Shown here piece after piece: positions 41,367-49,624 of a stretch of 64,000 bases of DNA. The stretch is taken from contig OZ116710.1 in the NCBI GenBank assembly GCA_964199315.1, positions 4,960,001 to 5,024,000 of the forward strand. The letters are read 5' to 3'. Position numbers and translations under genes: made by a program. The stretch is from Orbicella franksi (taxonomy: Eukaryota). Numbering within the stretch: the first letter of the stretch is position 1; the number at the start of each line of letters is the position of its first letter. The notes below the pieces were generated by a model. It searched no databases and had not been told where the DNA came from. It saw nothing but the letters and a program-made list of their open reading frames with translations.

Positions 41367-44300
41367 TTATTTTTCATGTTGGATGAGTGCAAGATACTGC
41401 CTGACTTTACTGGCCAGCTCTGCTTTCTTGTCTTTAGTTTTCACAGCGACACCTCTCTTCTTGAGCCAGTCAGCTAACGTTACGCTGTTTACCTTGCTGA
41501 GCTGAATTAGATATAAAGTCTACGTTATCAAGGCACTGTGACTTCGCGCGAGTGGTCGCGTTCCGCGCTCGTGTATCGCGTTTCGCTTTCTGCCCTGCTA
41601 ATCCGCCTGTTCTGAAGGCTAACTTACAAATGCCTTGACCAAGAATACAACAACACTATGACCCCGCCCTGTCTTGACCAAGAACATAACAACACTAAGA
41701 CCCTGCACTGTCTTGACCAATGACACAACAACACACTGACCCTAGGGCTGCCCGTGAGGGCTGGAAACAGGTTCGCTCGATCCGGAGCCCACCGCCCAAC
41801 TCACAGTCGTACAAGTCAACAATTTAATTTAGCAGATCTAGAAAAAGGCAATGAATACTGATTTACCTGATCCTGTAGGGCCAACTCTCTTACATCAACG
41901 TTCTCTTGAAGCTTAGGCTTTGATCTGGGTTTTTTTGAAGGTGTGTCATCGTTTGGGAAGCCATTGATCTACAATAAGAACAATATAAAACGATTATCAG
42001 CATGAAGTAGCTAACTGAGAGTATTGCTACTTCCCCTTGGGAGGGATGCTAGTCCACGGCGCAAGGCTGTCATCTTACGATTACGCTTTCTGAGAGCCCT
42101 TGCTAAGAATTGTTTTTAAATTATAGCTCTGAGAATTTGGAGATGACAAACCTATGGCCTTATGTCCCAAGCGACAAGAACAGGATTAAGTGATTACCAC
42201 CAAACCACTATTGCTAGCTTTCTGTTTCGTGTCTTCTTGACAGTAATATGCCGATATTCTAAGGATAAATTAGATGTTAAAGGATTAAAAACAGAGCAAA
42301 TACGTATATAACAACGTACCTGTCTCTTTCTTGCTAAGTCAGGCCTTGATTGAATCAAAGTAGTTAAATCAAAAGGCTCAAACAACTGGTTGGGGATGTT
42401 CAACCCTCGGACGTGCTCCGTAGAACTTGCTAATGACTTGGGAAGTCTGTTCGTAAGGGTACCTTTCAGCAATGAATGATTTTCCTCCTGCTGACCCCGT
42501 TGCTCAATATTTGGACTGGCAGTGTCTCCCGGAAGCCCATGAGTTGCGTTGCCTGCTAACGAAGCTGAAGGATTGTGAATGATAGGCGCTTGCCGTCTTA
42601 TTATAAGTCCAGGCCTTGTCTGGGGTAAACACTTTGACACTTGCGTCGACGAACTAGGGCTCCGCGCTGAAGTTATGTCATGCTTGCTATATGATGGTTC
42701 ACTGAAGACTCTCGTAAGAGCCTTTTGCCCCTGACTTAAGGTTAATAAAGGAATTTCCCTCGTGTTTTGTGTTGTTTCTCTATTTATCCCTCGTCCCATC
42801 GTATTGCTTTCTTGTGTTTGGCAGCTTCTTTTTTCAGGTAGGGTATGGCCAAGCCGCACATTGTTCCTTTCAAATGCAGTTTCCATCTTTTCCCGATCTA
42901 CCGTTTGGGATGAGTTTAGGGTCAAAACTGGAGATGAAGCTTTTTGTGAGTGTACAGTGTTACGAACCCTAGGCTCTGTTGAGACAGACGTTGTCACTTT
43001 TGGTGCAACTCCTCTTGTGAGAGTTACCGTTTTTCCGCTGTTTTTATCTGTTACTGGTTGTCTGACATGACTCTGCTCTCGTTTCCTCGGGAGCATGGGT
43101 ATAATTTGCGCGTCAGAGACAGAAGAGCTAACTATGTTGCCAGATGCTGTTCGTTCAGGGCCATCGGAGCGAAAAACGCGGTTGCTGGTGAAACGAGGCA
43201 CAAAAGGTGTTGATGATCGGGGAAATAACGGTGTAGCAATGGGTGTAGTGCTTGGTTGATTAACAGCATTGCTATCCACTCTTGGGGATTGTATTTGAGA
43301 AGATGCTTGAGACAATTTCAGCTGGGACGCTGAAGGAGAAATTTCTCTCTGTCTTGTAGTGTCCTGCGAACGGTGAATGGCAAAGGGTCTACAGTGGCTG
43401 AATTTAGGAGGCGCGGTCCTGGTTAAGTTACTGTGGTTTGCATGGGTAGCCTGTTGAAGCATGCTTGTTGGGTAGAGTGGAGAAGAGGTGAAAGCCAGGG
43501 GTGTCCCGCATACAGCTGGCATGCGACACGATAGGTCTCTAAGAAACGAACTGAAAATTAGTTGATGATCACAGCGAGAAGACACCAGAACCTGACTGCT
43601 ACGAATACAGCTTGCGGGGTATCTGGATGGTTTTTGTTAAGATTTTGATCATGATTTTGGTCTTCATGTACTCCCTGGCAAAAGAGTATTTGCAGTAAAT
43701 AGTTATTGAGCACACGGTTTCTGTATCCAGAGACCAAGGGTAAGTTATTACTGGGTAAAAAAAGATAAGATTAAGGCGTTTTATTGTGAGCCGGAATTTT
43801 CACTCGTTGAATGCGAGATGAAAGAGGAACGGTGATGAAGAATTAGACGCAGCGTAATTATATATCTAAGTACTCTTTTACGCTGTGTAAATACTTAGCT
43901 ATACTTGGCCGGACTAAAGGATACGTAAATATTTTTCCCTTAATGTAGTAGAAATGCACGTTGTAGAAAACCTTTTCTTCGGATGGTAGTCTGTATCCGT
44001 ACTGTGGGGGCAAAGTGAAGTAAAAGCGTGAAAGTATTACATTCACAGTTAGGAAGACTTTCTCGAGCAAATCCTTCGCGGTTGCAGGTAGCCCCGTGCG
44101 AAGGTCGAGATAGCGCTCCTCTCTCCGCGTTCTTCACACTTAGTTTTTGATGACATTTTTTCTCTTTCTGAACTCGGATTTCGCTGCTGGACAAGTTTCT
44201 AAAAGTCAGACTAAGTCTAACTGCCAGGTGGCAATACTGATGTCGATATTGCGTCATTTTTTGATTACATGCAAAACATAAGTATTGTATCTAGATTTGT

Positions 44301-47300
44301 TGCATAACGTGGTTACGCTGGTTGTGTGGAGCAATGTTTTCTTGTACCCGTCACAACTTCAATTTTCCAACGAGTTCCCCGTCGAATTCACGGCATGAGA
44401 TAAATTAGATATAGTGAAGCCCCGCTCTATGGACACCCGCTAATAGCGGACACTTTTCCTTGTCCGACAACTAAAAAGCTATTATATATTTTCCCTTAAA
44501 TTAACCCGCTTAATACGCGGGCACAACTGGATAATGCGAACACTTTATCATGTCCCTTTGGTGTCCATATGAATGGGGTTCCACTGTACATTTCAATGCT
44601 CATCGCATTTATGTAATAAATTTTAGACGAGAACTGAAAAAAATCAACCTTCCTTGCATTTTTTTGTCCCATCATGTCTTACAAATTCTTGCCCTACGTA
44701 CCATTAGTTTCCAGTGTTTTCTTAGTTCTTCGTAACTTGCGAACGGACAGCCTTCTGGTAGTTGGTGAGTTATGCTAAATATTCTTCCCTTTTTCAAGCT
44801 GAAAAATTTGAAACAGTAATGTTGTGATGAAGTCCTGTGCGATCTCTTGGTTTAAAAGAATCTTAGGTACCAAAAAGATTACTTACCTCGGCAACACATA
44901 ACACAAATCGTCAACAATAGCGGCATCACTTATCAGAGCATCGCTGTTGCTTTTAAATTCGTCAAGTGCTCTTGTTGACGCAGTGAAATGCTCCGGCTGA
45001 AATCCAAAGAATATGTTTTTGTTTTCAGCCCTGTGCCTCTTACGGTGATTCCTTAGTATTGCATTGCGCATCCCTACTGCTCACGATTTCCGCGTCATTA
45101 GCGCGCGCACGTGAGCGCTTGCGCGTACAAAATGTAAGAGATTTCCCTCAAACTAAGCTGGATAGCGAAATAAATGCTCCTTTTCTCTTAAACGAGCGCG
45201 GTGACCCCCATTTTTATTTCATTATTTCAATGAGAACAATATCCTCAATAACTGACAAAAAAAATAGCAGAAATCTGTGGCTACTTTTTTGGCAAATGAA
45301 ATAAATACTTCAGAGGGAGATATAAAGGGCCCAATAGCGCATGTCCAAATTATGTTTCCTGTAAAGGATAAAAAAATGCAGGGTATTTGAAGACAGTTGT
45401 TCTAGAACGTAGATGAATAAACAATCAAAGAAAGTCAAACTCTATGCGATATAATACGCTGCATTGAAAAATAATCGAGCGTATTTGTTGCGCACGGAAA
45501 TTACCAAAAGTCACCTAAATAACCTTATTTGTCAGCAATGTGGCGTGAAAACAAGCATGGTGATCCCCTCTTTTTACTACGTTTTTAATATCTCCTTGTC
45601 TTGTAACAACAGCGTACCAAGTTACATCGGAAATCTATGGCGGGTTCTTTTACTAGGGAATCACCTTAAGGTATACTGAACATAGAAACAAGACTTAACC
45701 AAGTACAATCAACGCAACGAACCAACGAAAACTGGAAACAAAACCATGCAACTGATGGCATGCACGAGAAAAAGAGCAACTAGTGATGGGTTGAAAAACC
45801 AGTCTGTTTACTCTAAAAGTCTAATAAGATGGCTAAACAAATTTAAAAAGCAAATAGGTTGATAGCAATCACCGGTAAGACATGTTTACGCTAGCAACCA
45901 TGCACCCTTTTTACAATTAAATTTTCTACTTTTGATCGACTTTAACCTCGTCTGCATGGAGTATTTTAATTTCTTAACTGATTTGGTTACAGGATAGTAT
46001 CCGAAATCTTACCTTGCAAGGGATCGACTTCAATGAACGAGCTCGCAATCCAATGCATATCTTGTCAGTTATAGTGACTTCCAAAGCTGCAATTAGTTTT
46101 CAAACACAGAATCAATGATCTGATGCATATATCAGTCAATTGATTTGTAATAAGCCGTAGTGATGTGATGCGTATGACCACTTATAAGAATTATTTTATT
46201 AAAACATTACTGTAGACTTGTAGTGGAGTGTTACTTGCGATCTAACGTAGTACAAAAGTATTAACGATTCAAGGAGACTCACGAAGGAAACACCTTGCTC
46301 TTGGCATTATTTTCCGTACAGGAGATAATAATACTTGTACAGGAAAATGTGTTGAATAGCACTTAAAAGAACTTTTAAGTAATCAAAAAATTTCAAGTTA
46401 ACGTAACTCGTATATTACGCGTTATAGGTCCTAATCTTGTTAAAAGCCATTGATTCAGCCAACAGAACTTGGGCCGGACCACCTAGCTGTGAAAACAGGC
46501 TGAAAATTGAGTCTATCGCGCGTCTTATATTTTCCACTCCCCAATCTTCCCACACGCAGCTATATGTGCGCCAATGCCAAAAATCTCTGCGGAGGAGAGC
46601 AAGTCCCTGGTCCGACTTAATAGGCTCGCTAGTTCGAAACTTTTGGTGATGATTAAAGCATAGCTTGAAATCAGTGCAATACATACAATAACGAGAAGCA
46701 ATTTCCAGTAAAAAGTAGTGTAACTGATAGCTGTAACTGGCAAAAATACAGCAGGAAAATCAGTAAAAAAAACAAACAAGAAATTCAACATTTACCGTCT
46801 TGGTAATACTTACTGATTGCATTTAGCTTCGAATTTTCCAGCATGAATTCACGACCTACAGGTAGAATTAAGTAAAACTGGGTTTAGCATATTGATATGC
46901 TAATGAATGGTTCAGAACACTCAGGGAAAGAACCAGAACTGTACTGTTTCTATTATTTTATGATCTTTTTAGCTTACAAGCGAGGGTTCTTTGGAGGATA
47001 TTTCAGTTGCACCACTCAGCAAAACTAAACAGAACGAAACCTTTATTGACACCTTAGAAAGGTGGTCATAGCGTAACTTGCATAAAACAAACTGCTCAAC
47101 GACGGCCGTAGACATGATAATAAACGGCTTTGAAAAAGATGTGATCTTGTCGCATCAACTATGCTAACCTTCGTGCACATATTCCTGCAAACCTCTCTAC
47201 ACACACTTTGTAATTCTTTTTATAGAGATGACGCATGATAAATAGAGGCCTTGTTTCTCTCATAACCCCAATTTTTAAATGGACATTTACAATACCTTGT

Positions 47301-49419
47301 ACAAGAAACTCGCCCGCCTTGTTCCACAGAGGTGCAAGTTTCTGTTTCATCGTGAAAGAGAAGCAAAACTGGAACAGGCTCTTTGTTAGATCCACTTGCT
47401 CCGTGCTCTGTCAACATAAGAGAAGCACATCTGTTATACATCACTTGAAACTATAACGTCTCAAGCGTAGAAATGAAAGTTGCAAAGAAGCCAAGCTTGT
47501 TTAAAGACCAAGGATTACCCCGGGGAGAGTCCCATACAAAAAGCACGGGGGTGCTCGTCGGAAATTTTGAAAAGAACCTCTAACAGGTAAACGAGATCCT
47601 GCTTTGTGGGCGTGGCTTGAACTTTTTTTCACTCCTATGAGGTACCAATTCTAAACCAACAGGCTATCTTCGATCCTGTGAACCTTTTGAGGCTGAAGAC
47701 CCTGAGAGGTACCAAAATGGCTTTTTTAACCCCTAAAAGGTAAGACGAACAACCCTGTCCTTTTTATAAGGAAGTTCCCCCCCCCCCCCTGGGGGATTAG
47801 TTGCTACATAAAAGAAACGGGTGGATTTCTGCTGCGGAAACTGTAAAGTCTATTGAATGATCAATACTTTTCTGCCTCTTTGGAGCTAGAAAGTGTTTTT
47901 TCTGACTGTTCGTGACTCTGGTCACAAACGGAAAATAAAGAGAACTAACATTTGGGGAGACCTCGGACTGCCACTGGACAGCAATGCCATCATAAATTAA
48001 CCTGGCTCACTTGCAAACTGACAGGCAGTGCTGCTGTCTTGTTATAAAAGCAACACGGTTGTTTAATTTAACTTTGATGCAAGATAGTGGGCCATGATAA
48101 GATTTTGTTAAGGATGTCGTGGAAAAATTTAACTGGACTGATTATGAAATCATGTACAAGTAAACATTTAATTACTTACAACAACTCTTGCCACCTCATA
48201 GATCAATGGTAGAGCGATACATAGGCATCGAAAACGGGCATGGATTCGACTTGTCTTAGTAGGGTAAATTTCAGTCTTTCTATGTTTTGATACAATTACC
48301 TAGTAAAATATTACATACCATGAAACATGACAGTTAGGATTTCTTTTCGAGTGTAGCTAGGGGTCAAATCATAAATTCTTGGGTAGCTTTCTGACCACCA
48401 AGCCCTCCTCAAAAAATTCTTTTACGTTCCCCCCATAAATTGGAACATCCTTTTGCATTTTTAGTTAGCCGCACTGTGAAGATGCAATTCTACTCACTCG
48501 TCTAGAGTCGGGAATTTTAAAAGTAGTGGAAAATGCATGCGTTTATTAAAGTAAACATGAAGGAGCTAAGAGTTCATTTACCTGTATCTTGAGTCTTTCT
48601 AGTAGCTCTTGAAATTGTGAAGACTCATAAGTTACCTTCTGCAGAAGACACGAAAACTATACAGGAAACAGTCAGTCAAACAAAACCCTTAAAAGGGTTT
48701 TGTTTGACTGTCTGTTCCTGTATTGTTTCAGTTTTAAAAAACTGCATTATCAAATGAACTTCCCTTCAGTTTCTGAAACTGCAAGTGTATAAGCTTAAAT
48801 TTTCTGTAACTTATCATTATCGTGTTAAATACTGATAGCTAAATTTATTTTCTTTCCATGCAAGTAGGAAAATTTTTGTAGGAGGTAACCTTAATTGACA
48901 TGCCCTTGCTGATGATTTCCTAATTCTCATCACCCTTCCGCTTGACAATGTATCTACACAGTAAGGAGAAATTATATTTTGATATTTACTCTCGTGAATT
49001 TGGTCAAATCCACAAGTACAAGCTAAAATAACTTTCTCACGACGATAAAATTTGCGGCTTTAAATATATTGCTCAAGTTAAAATATTTCGTACATACCGG
49101 TGTTACGAGAAATAACTGGTTCCTTTCATCCAGAAACGGAGACACAAGAATTTTGGGTTCTGTGAAAATTAATTCTCTGCAAATGAAGTAGAATATTCAG
49201 CATACAAGATTCTAAAGTCTACAATATGTTTACCAGTGTGCTGTTCTCTTTCAAAGTAAAATCGGGCTTATTTGAAGAATATTACCTGCAACACATGGGC
49301 TGAATAGTGCTTATTTCATCGTCCTTATTCGTCTGTATGGTAGCTTTTGTAGCAACAAGTTCTTCGAGGTTTGGTAGGGAACCGAAAAACAGACCAGAAA
49401 TACCATCTCGGTTTCTCAT
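41367..49419 (-). CDS. C18orf63: C18orf63-like protein (DUF4708 family), 12 exons, ~773 aa, with C-terminal SAP/HeH-like motif
   Basis: Exons 5'->3': 49419-49286, 49176-49098, 48638-48582, 47407-47296, 46855-46814, 46086-46013, 44996-44887, 44798-44702, 44001-43925, 43622-42320, 41968-41867, 41501-41367. Total 2322 nt with all phases consistent. Peptides LFFGSLPNLEEL, LAPLWNKAGEFLVQGREF, LCYVLPSLKKG, CPFASYEELRKHWKLMYGYRLP and FTYPASCIRS match recalled human C18orf63. AATAAA on - strand at 41162-41167. Confidence 0.9.
41632..41810 (-). mobile_element. Degenerate SINE fragment with triplicated 39-bp core
   Basis: The reverse complement resembles the head and central domain of the 8033 SINE. 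Units start at 41632, 41671 and 41710. Confidence 0.6.
42000..42062 (-). mobile_element. SINE 3' fragment (same family as 8033-8333)
   Basis: The reverse complement reads TGGACTAGCATCCC..GGGGAAGTAGCAATACTC, like 8218-8260. Confidence 0.55.
43623..43924 (-). other. U12-type (minor spliceosome) GT-AG intron, intron 9 of C18orf63-like gene
   Basis: 5' splice site AC|GTATCCTTT. Branch-point-like ATCTTAAC at 43643-43636 lies just upstream of a CAG acceptor with no polypyrimidine tract. Splicing restores FTYPASCIRS. Confidence 0.88.
44412..44586. mobile_element. Tc1/mariner (pogo/Tigger)-type MITE in a C18orf63 intron
   Basis: TA|TAGTGAAGCCCC ... GGGGTTCCACTG|TA, with TA flanks and a CAGTG-type TIR. 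Confidence 0.65.
47518..47794. mobile_element. MITE (CCCCGGGG..CCCATA / TAT..CCCCC..GGGG termini)
   Basis: Imperfect GC-rich terminal inverted repeats inside a C18orf63 intron. Confidence 0.5.
48662..48720. repeat. 59-bp palindrome
   Basis: The inner 18 bp CAGTCAAACAAAACCCTT / AAGGGTTTTGTTTGACTG are perfect, around a 2-nt spacer. Confidence 0.85.
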
Positions 49420-49624
49420 TTCTTCGACCCTAGCAAGCCTTGTCAAAATATTCGCGCAGAAAAATTATATTGCTAGCCCTAACTGTGAATTACTTTTGGA
49501 AGGAGTGATAAAAACTAATTAATCAAGCGAACGAAAGTTGTTTTCGAACGAAGAAACAAATCGCTCCTCAGTTCTCACAGCTTTTGGCTCGCGATGATCT
49601 CAAGCGACGCTGACAGCTCGACAA

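Follow-up and report, generated by a model that had tools for sequence, protein, structure and literature searches.

A predicted half-Argonaute lobe joined to a SAP/HeH-like domain in C18orf63 (DUF4708) of a coral

Can the front half of an Argonaute exist in an animal as a protein of its own, and what might it do there? The question is raised by a minus-strand gene in a 64,000-nucleotide stretch of DNA from the coral Orbicella franksi (contig OZ116710.1 of assembly GCA_964199315.1, positions 4,960,001 to 5,024,000 of the forward strand; this whole stretch is called the window below). A first-pass annotation had placed the gene in the C18orf63/DUF4708 family and had read its N-terminal half, by eye, as a stand-alone Argonaute N-L1-PAZ module. 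Our best explanation, to which we give a probability of about 0.6, is that the protein joins a half-Argonaute lobe, a disordered linker, and a C-terminal SAP/HeH domain and serves as a chromatin adaptor in germ cells.

Family membership and the predicted N-terminal lobe

The window gene is the coral orthologue of C18orf63/DUF4708 (PF15813). Its exon translations match the Pfam DUF4708 model at successive profile positions, three of the pieces exceeding the 27-bit cut-off by themselves, and the full-length collinear coral orthologues P0021 and P0027 match it with E values of 7e-75 and 2e-77. DUF4708, a pan-metazoan family, is single-copy in this coral genome (the 497-Mb scleractinian assembly G000, where the region lies on contig C13). 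A profile search gathered 423 cluster representatives of the family at E<=1e-3. A homologue search with the N domain alone reached corals, echinoderms, and one EukProt entry; the taxon range was taken from cluster look-ups, which named members in corals, echinoderms, amphioxus, coelacanth, teleosts, a snail, a tick, Hemiptera, thrips, Hymenoptera, and the sponge Oscarella. The lobe model described below matches human C18orf63 (Q68DL7, residues 1-306) with a template-modelling (TM) score of 0.94, a root-mean-square deviation of 2.0 A, 31% identity, and E 7.5e-36, and it matches the C18orf63 cluster of the ESM Atlas at TM 0.95. Because the human model matches and a sponge member was found, the earlier statement that the family is conserved from cnidarians to humans is right and slightly conservative.

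The structural evidence consists of predicted models of an orthologue and not of the window copy itself. The protein modelled was P0021 residues 1-300; its identity to the window protein is 77%, and the alignment of the two has a single indel, of 3 residues. AlphaFold2, supplied with a 69-sequence family alignment, folded it with a predicted local distance difference test (pLDDT) score of 95.8 and a predicted TM score of 0.90. In this model, N, L1, PAZ, and L2 domains follow one another in the Argonaute/PIWI order and pack as one lobe. The comparison by AlphaFold and Foldseek that the first-pass annotation had suggested gave 88 matches in the PDB at E<=1e-3, and the best 50 of these, each spanning the full query, were all MED13 or Argonaute/PIWI structures, the latter drawn from every domain of life. 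MED13, a subunit of the CDK8 kinase module of Mediator, came first (8TQC chain D, E 4.7e-8; 7KPV chain D, E 1e-7), standing 3-4 Z units above all other solved structures. In the AlphaFold database the family itself led the lists, joined in the cluster library by three unannotated entries, followed by MED13 and MED13L N-termini (about residues 11-330, E 1e-10 to 1e-7) and then by PIWI and AGO proteins. Identity is higher to MED13 (12-14%) than to PIWI/AGO (8-11%). In a language-model feature search, which does not depend on the model, nine of the ten clusters listed carry PAZ, ArgoL1, or ArgoN, and the others have no family. On these predictions it is very probable that the first ~305 residues form a "half Argonaute" lobe made up of N, L1, a PAZ-like domain, and the start of L2.

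MED13 is the closest known relative in shape, because of this gap in scores and because it shares with C18orf63 a layout of N, L1, and PAZ followed by an intrinsically disordered region. In yeast and human MED13, a disordered region of 500-700 amino acids comes directly after PAZ (residues 313-814 and 350-1069) (PMC7810384; bioRxiv 2024.07.01.601608). MED13, a partner of MED12 and cyclin C, then goes on to L2, MID, and PIWI, whereas C18orf63 ends in SAP/HeH; MED13 is also ubiquitous, whereas vertebrate C18orf63 is germline-enriched. The two may share a specific ancestor; a search of the coral's own genome for Med13_N gave no match, but its controls were silent too. What C18orf63 resembles in Argonaute and PIWI proteins (MILI 9IJ5, Siwi 5GUH, TtAgo 3F73, human Ago2 4W5Q) is the N-L1-PAZ-L2 half. 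It lacks the MID/PIWI lobe and hence has no guide 5'-end pocket and no slicer, and in a low-confidence alignment its 3'-end pocket residues are partly conserved.

The fold of the lobe was also seen in the three unannotated AlphaFold entries (A0A0K9NX59, TM 0.73; K4AJK4; A5K3E4), and look-alikes in the Atlas include a green-algal cluster of similar length (TM 0.75, 290 amino acids aligned) and a Nitrososphaerota cluster (TM 0.62). From these green-algal, archaeal, and unannotated models, the lobe family may be older than animals.

The PAZ-like domain was also considered separately. Residues 158-270 of P0021 (161-273 of the window protein) folded alone with a pLDDT of 94 into a barrel with a helix/hairpin appendage. 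Foldseek found nothing for this isolated model at E<=1e-3; its weak matches (E 0.06-0.7, TM<=0.49) were mostly PAZ domains mixed with Tudor-type barrels. In a wide, unbiased VIA search, the top 23 of 48,161 chains were mostly PAZ domains, including those of Drosophila Piwi, human Ago1, Dicer from Giardia, fly, and human, and the plant proteins DCL3 and DCL4. Also among the 23 were MED13, the PAZ/Tudor region of Xrn1, and a single baseplate protein of a phage. The top matches aligned 80-90 of the 113 residues, versus ~50 for generic SH3-like barrels. Because the absolute structural scores are modest, we call the domain PAZ-like and not a proven PAZ. Compared with Dicer (DCL3 7VG3, DCL4 9KBY, Giardia 2FFL, human 4NGB), C18orf63 is without platform, connector helix, and RNase III domains, and the similarity of the PAZ regions lies below Pfam detection.

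At the sequence level, the DUF4708 profile was aligned by hhalign with a Dicer PAZ profile, for which Dicer genes of the coral itself were combined with related sequences, in local mode (global mode aligned 6 columns only). The score was 27.7 (P 5.8e-4, probability 29%), which is sub-threshold; the reversed profile scored 11.0 and 120 column-shuffled profiles scored 13.0+/-2.7, with a maximum of 23.9. In the alignment the MKKG strand pairs with the PAZ strand, the PF loop with the F loop, the SY..L..HWK..YGY helix with the aromatic helix, and FTYP..C with (Y/I)xPxxC. The register that had been proposed by eye is thereby recovered, at low confidence. A thin profile of four coral Argonaute PAZ sequences gave the same register without significance (15.8 versus 13.4 reversed). 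In this low-confidence register, F222, H231/W232, Y236, and Y262 of the window protein face PAZ F, YF, Y/H, and YL, and KK faces KRK; going by PAZ-RNA structures, these PAZ residues would belong to the 3'-end pocket. At two other positions of the pocket, those of the His of ..ITH and the Tyr of KYRV, the family shows no aromatic residue in this alignment.

Linker and C-terminal domain

Beyond the lobe, residues about 309-715 are low in complexity, rich in S, T, P, Q, and R, basic (isoelectric point 10-11), and poorly conserved. The composition of the exon 10 product (13% S, 11% T, 9% P, 9% R, 7% Q; isoelectric point 11) agrees with the S/T/P/Q/R-rich exon of ~400 amino acids described at first pass, and judging from its sequence this basic region is probably disordered. 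Most DUF4708 members, from corals to coelacanth, carry one to three copies of a linker motif, [IVL][IV]PxF[KR]xK, which matched no known docking motif. The copy in the window protein, IIPMLPRKR, has L in place of F.

The last ~60 residues are again well conserved in the family. The small C-terminal domain noted at first pass is thus present and conserved, and from matches at the family level we identify it as SAP/HeH. Among 39 members, Pfam matches to it comprised Ish1 in 28 (best 5e-6), HeH/LEM in 26 (best 7e-8), SAP in 7 (best 1.4e-6), and Slx4 in 10; one further piece of evidence is a precomputed PF12949 match carried by one family member. Ish1, HeH, SAP, and Slx4 are helix-extension-helix families of the SAP/LEM-like clan, in which SAP and HeH are best known for binding DNA or chromatin. 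The C-terminal 35-40 amino acids of C18orf63 fit the pattern of this group (PF02037, PF12949, PF10281, PF09494), L..L..WLK.RG....K.KK..L..KV, except that K or D stands where the SAP loop usually has glycine.

The protein contains neither MID nor PIWI, as the first-pass annotation had stated: the corresponding Pfam models matched nothing in full-length P0021, P0027, or 83 further full-length members. Sequence-level searches were otherwise mostly negative. No Pfam PAZ, ArgoN, ArgoL1, or Med13 match was found in 152 members (69 scanned for PAZ at E<=10 and 83 at E<=1), the only recurrent families in both sets being DUF4708 and those of the SAP/HeH clan. Searched against PDB sequences with HMMER, the whole-domain family profile gave no match at E<=10, and the PAZ-like profile gave two chance matches only (E 0.34). 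Local hidden Markov models of coral Dicer and Argonaute PAZ domains found nothing significant in more than 170 DUF4708 proteins. The window copy of the C-terminal domain itself falls below the Pfam cut-offs (Ish1, E 3e-4, 21.4 of 26.6 bits; HeH/LEM, E 0.027, 14.7 of 28.9 bits). An arthropod C18orf63-like cluster in the Atlas is annotated as PAZ in 25% of its members; this annotation could not be reproduced. The proposal of an Argonaute N-L1-PAZ module is partly supported: it stands in its predicted fold and domain order, but it finds no Pfam counterpart, and the closest shape is that of MED13. As a structural interpretation it is supported by the predicted models.

Gene model and other loci

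A minus-strand reading combined with tblastn of coral orthologues gives a gene of 12 exons (Table 1). The coding sequence of 2322 nucleotides is an uninterrupted frame for 773 amino acids, and every intron is bounded by GT..AG. Intron 9, which splits the conserved FT/YP motif, has the donor GTATCCTTT and a TCTTAAC branch-site-like box 13 nucleotides before the AG and lacks a pyrimidine tract. The peptide strings read at first pass (..LVQGREF.., TLEVTITDKICIGLRARSLK, and IVDDLCYVLPSLKKGRIF...KIFTYPASCI) all occur in the product in the same order, so the by-eye splicing was correct, including the awkward FT/YP junction. The interval given for it, 43540-49419, holds exons 1-9 and the start of exon 10, but the gene runs on to 41367 and includes two more small exons.

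Table 1. Features of the C18orf63 gene and two further open reading frames, in window coordinates
Feature	Position	Strand	Product or content	Evidence
Whole gene, 12 exons	49419..41367	-	773 amino acids	minus-strand reading, tblastn
Exon 1, with ATG	49286..49419	-	residues 1-45; Argonaute-N-like domain begins	DUF4708 profile positions 3-39
Exon 2	49098..49176	-	residues 45-71	tblastn to P0021/P0027; AG/GT borders
Exon 3	48582..48638	-	residues 72-90	tblastn, borders
Exon 4	47296..47407	-	residues 91-128; nearly invariant LAPxWNKAG..QG motif, L1-like linker	Pfam, tblastn, borders, family alignment
Exon 5	46814..46855	-	residues 128-142; GREF... strand, L1-like region	tblastn, borders
Exon 6	46013..46086	-	residues 142-166; L1-like beta hairpin	tblastn, borders, model
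Exon 7	44887..44996	-	residues 167-203; PAZ-like domain, two capping helices and first strand	Pfam, tblastn, model
Exon 8	44702..44798	-	residues 203-235; PAZ-like, SLKKGR strand, PF loop, aromatic helix SYEELRKHWKLM	Pfam, model, hhalign
Exon 9	43925..44001	-	residues 236-261; YGYRLP, last PAZ-like strands	Pfam, borders, model
Intron 9, U12-type by signals	43623..43924	-	junction restores conserved FT/YP	sequence reading
Exon 10, 1303 nucleotides	42320..43622	-	residues 261-695; PAZ-like end (YPASC), L2-like helix to about residue 308, then S/T/P/Q/R-rich region	
Linker-motif copy	43079..43105	-	residues 434-442	
Exon 11	41867..41968	-	residues 696-729; KKPRSKPK resembling a nuclear localization signal (41912-41935), first conserved part of C-terminal domain	tblastn, borders
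Exon 12, with stop codon	41367..41501	-	residues 730-773; SAP/HeH-like helix-extension-helix domain	Pfam models
Open reading frame, 276 amino acids	19649..20479	-	N-terminal HMG box; probably a Sox/HMG-type transcription factor gene	PF00505, E 1.5e-23
Second open reading frame, 276 amino acids	56288..57118	-	equal in length to, and unlike, the HMG-box frame	no Pfam match

The best transcript evidence is the collinear 718-residue orthologue P0021, which lies on an assembled contig of 2953 nucleotides from a sequencing run of a related coral; because it is only 2953 nucleotides long, this contig cannot hold the introns. Public RNA runs compared with positions 43500-49450 gave no spliced reads across the predicted junctions; they yielded unspliced contigs of low depth and two very abundant intronic repeats, which neither supports nor opposes expression of the window copy. 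The repeats lie in introns 6 and 3 (about 45050-45690 and 47480-47880), where the depths of contigs from four RNA libraries add up to thousands; these contigs are 90-95% identical to the window and contain many internal joints. Both stretches look like members of repeat families that are very abundant and transcribed. More than 10 G stand in a row near 47790, in the area of intron 3.

Genes for Argonaute and Dicer proteins were seen elsewhere in the coral genome. At about 24.62-24.87 Mb of contig C8 of assembly G000 (loci L007-L018), tandem sets of PAZ and Piwi exons appear to make up at least eight AGO-type genes. They are of two sequence types (VEITH/KYRV and IRIQTTH/KYTV), and stop codons fall within several of the matches. 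PIWI-clade-like PAZ exons were found on contigs C10 and C12. The coral AGO/PIWI genes are split into small exons. Two Dicer-type genes, L003 (G000 C4:32.55 Mb) and L004 (G000 C1:6.47 Mb), encode PAZ and both RNase III domains, with a platform domain also in L003, each in a single frame (710 and 642 amino acids) that is an unusually large exon for this genome.

Candidate mechanisms and significance

The architecture, the absence of MID and PIWI, and the family-level SAP/HeH membership were obtained by computation; every step of the mechanism that we build on them is one that we infer. We hypothesize, tentatively and at somewhat less than even odds, that C18orf63 is a nuclear, chromatin-tethered adaptor in germ cells entering meiosis. 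The SAP/HeH domain and the basic linker would hold DNA or chromatin, and the PAZ-like lobe would capture a ligand through a nearly invariant aromatic/basic cluster (K205/K206, F222, H231, W232, Y236, R239, and Y262 in the window protein). This ligand could be a single-stranded nucleic-acid 3' end, as in canonical PAZ domains; alternatively, it could be a segment of peptide, as in MED13, whose pocket is taken up by L2. Binding of a nucleic-acid 3' end by the modelled pocket is in our judgment rather unlikely. The proposed cellular setting is that of the vertebrate orthologues: C18orf63 is oocyte-enriched in chicken and human alongside synaptonemal-complex and double-strand-break genes (PMC9570461), rises around meiosis in the human fetal ovary (PMC12055976), and marks preleptotene spermatocytes (PMC12081002). 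In our literature search the vertebrate gene occurs in papers solely within gene lists, and no paper was found that links C18orf63 with Argonaute or mentions DUF4708.

The alternative that survives best, although we consider it somewhat unlikely, is that C18orf63 is a protein scaffold, a paralogue or truncated derivative of the MED13 N-lobe that makes protein-protein contacts only and binds no nucleic acid. Its PAZ-like pocket would then be occupied from within the same chain, either by the L2-like helix or by the conserved motif of the linker. The lead of MED13 over the other solved structures, its position in the AlphaFold database directly after the family and the three unannotated entries, its higher identity, and the long disordered region that directly follows PAZ in both proteins are all consistent with this, as are the repeats of a conserved linear motif in the linker. 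In MED13, the PAZ pocket and central channel are occupied by the protein's own L2 and nucleic acid was not seen (PMC7810384; bioRxiv 2024.07.01.601608), and a later analysis concluded that the nucleic-acid interface is too diverged for Argonaute-like binding (PMC12477606). However, Med13_N left no sequence signal in the Pfam scans of 152 members, some of the MED12 contacts of MED13 are made by insertions in MID/PIWI, a part that C18orf63 does not have (PMC7810384), and the conserved basic/aromatic cluster and the SAP domain would fit nucleic-acid binding equally.

The first-pass annotation had suggested an adaptor or decoy that binds small-RNA 3' ends. On this reading the N-L1-PAZ module would bind 2-nucleotide overhangs or 2'-O-methylated piRNA ends and act in a germline small-RNA pathway. 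The PAZ-like topology, with PAZ domains of PIWI, AGO, and Dicer as its best matches, speaks for such a role, and so does the hhalign register, in which the conserved PF, HW, Y, and TYP..C stand opposite PAZ F, YF, Y/H, and YLP..C, and MKKG opposite MKRKY. The coral genome has a rich AGO/PIWI/Dicer repertoire, and the vertebrate orthologues are enriched in germ cells (PMC9570461, PMC12081002). We nevertheless judge it unlikely. MED13 is not known to bind RNA. The closest structures to the lobe are those of MED13, whose self-filled pocket showed no RNA (PMC7810384), and not those of PIWI/AGO; Pfam PAZ matched 0 of 152 members; two pocket positions are without an aromatic counterpart in the low-confidence alignment; and the SAP/HeH domain and the patch resembling a nuclear localization signal suggest DNA or chromatin.

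A more speculative possibility, which we regard as very unlikely, is that eukaryotes have a split Argonaute-like machine whose free-standing N-lobe is C18orf63, tethered by SAP/HeH to meiotic chromatin. It would capture RNA or single-stranded DNA 3' ends there (those of small or nascent RNA, or single-stranded DNA ends) or complement a MID-PIWI-type partner in trans, much as do the APAZ partners of prokaryotic short Argonautes (SiAgo Aga1 9LGW/8ZNJ; SPARTA, SPARDA, SPARHA). APAZ proteins, which are without a PAZ barrel, are found as fusions with TIR, SIR2, or nuclease effectors and work in trans with a short prokaryotic Argonaute encoded beside them; we know of no eukaryotic MID-PIWI-only partner for C18orf63. 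If true, such a machine would be a fourth Argonaute-related lineage in animals besides AGO, PIWI, and MED13. Least probable of all is an incidental or convergent likeness. DUF4708 would then share no homology with Argonaute, MED13, or PAZ, and its ferredoxin-like domain, beta linker, and SH3-like barrel would merely happen to pack in the manner of an Argonaute N-lobe.

The preferred reading of C18orf63 as a half-Argonaute lobe joined by a disordered linker to a SAP/HeH domain would mean that in eukaryotes, too, an Argonaute N-lobe can occur separately from MID-PIWI; apart from this case we know of such an arrangement in prokaryotic short-Argonaute systems alone. It also prompts the question of how MED13 and DUF4708 are related. 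C18orf63/DUF4708 extends from sponges and corals to humans and is enriched in oocytes and in spermatogenic cells near meiotic entry, and it has so far been assigned no fold or function. The reading as a MED13-like half-Argonaute with a SAP/HeH domain gives this orphan gene its first testable structural hypothesis and opens others on ligand binding by the PAZ-like pocket, on chromatin tethering, and on a role in germ cells.

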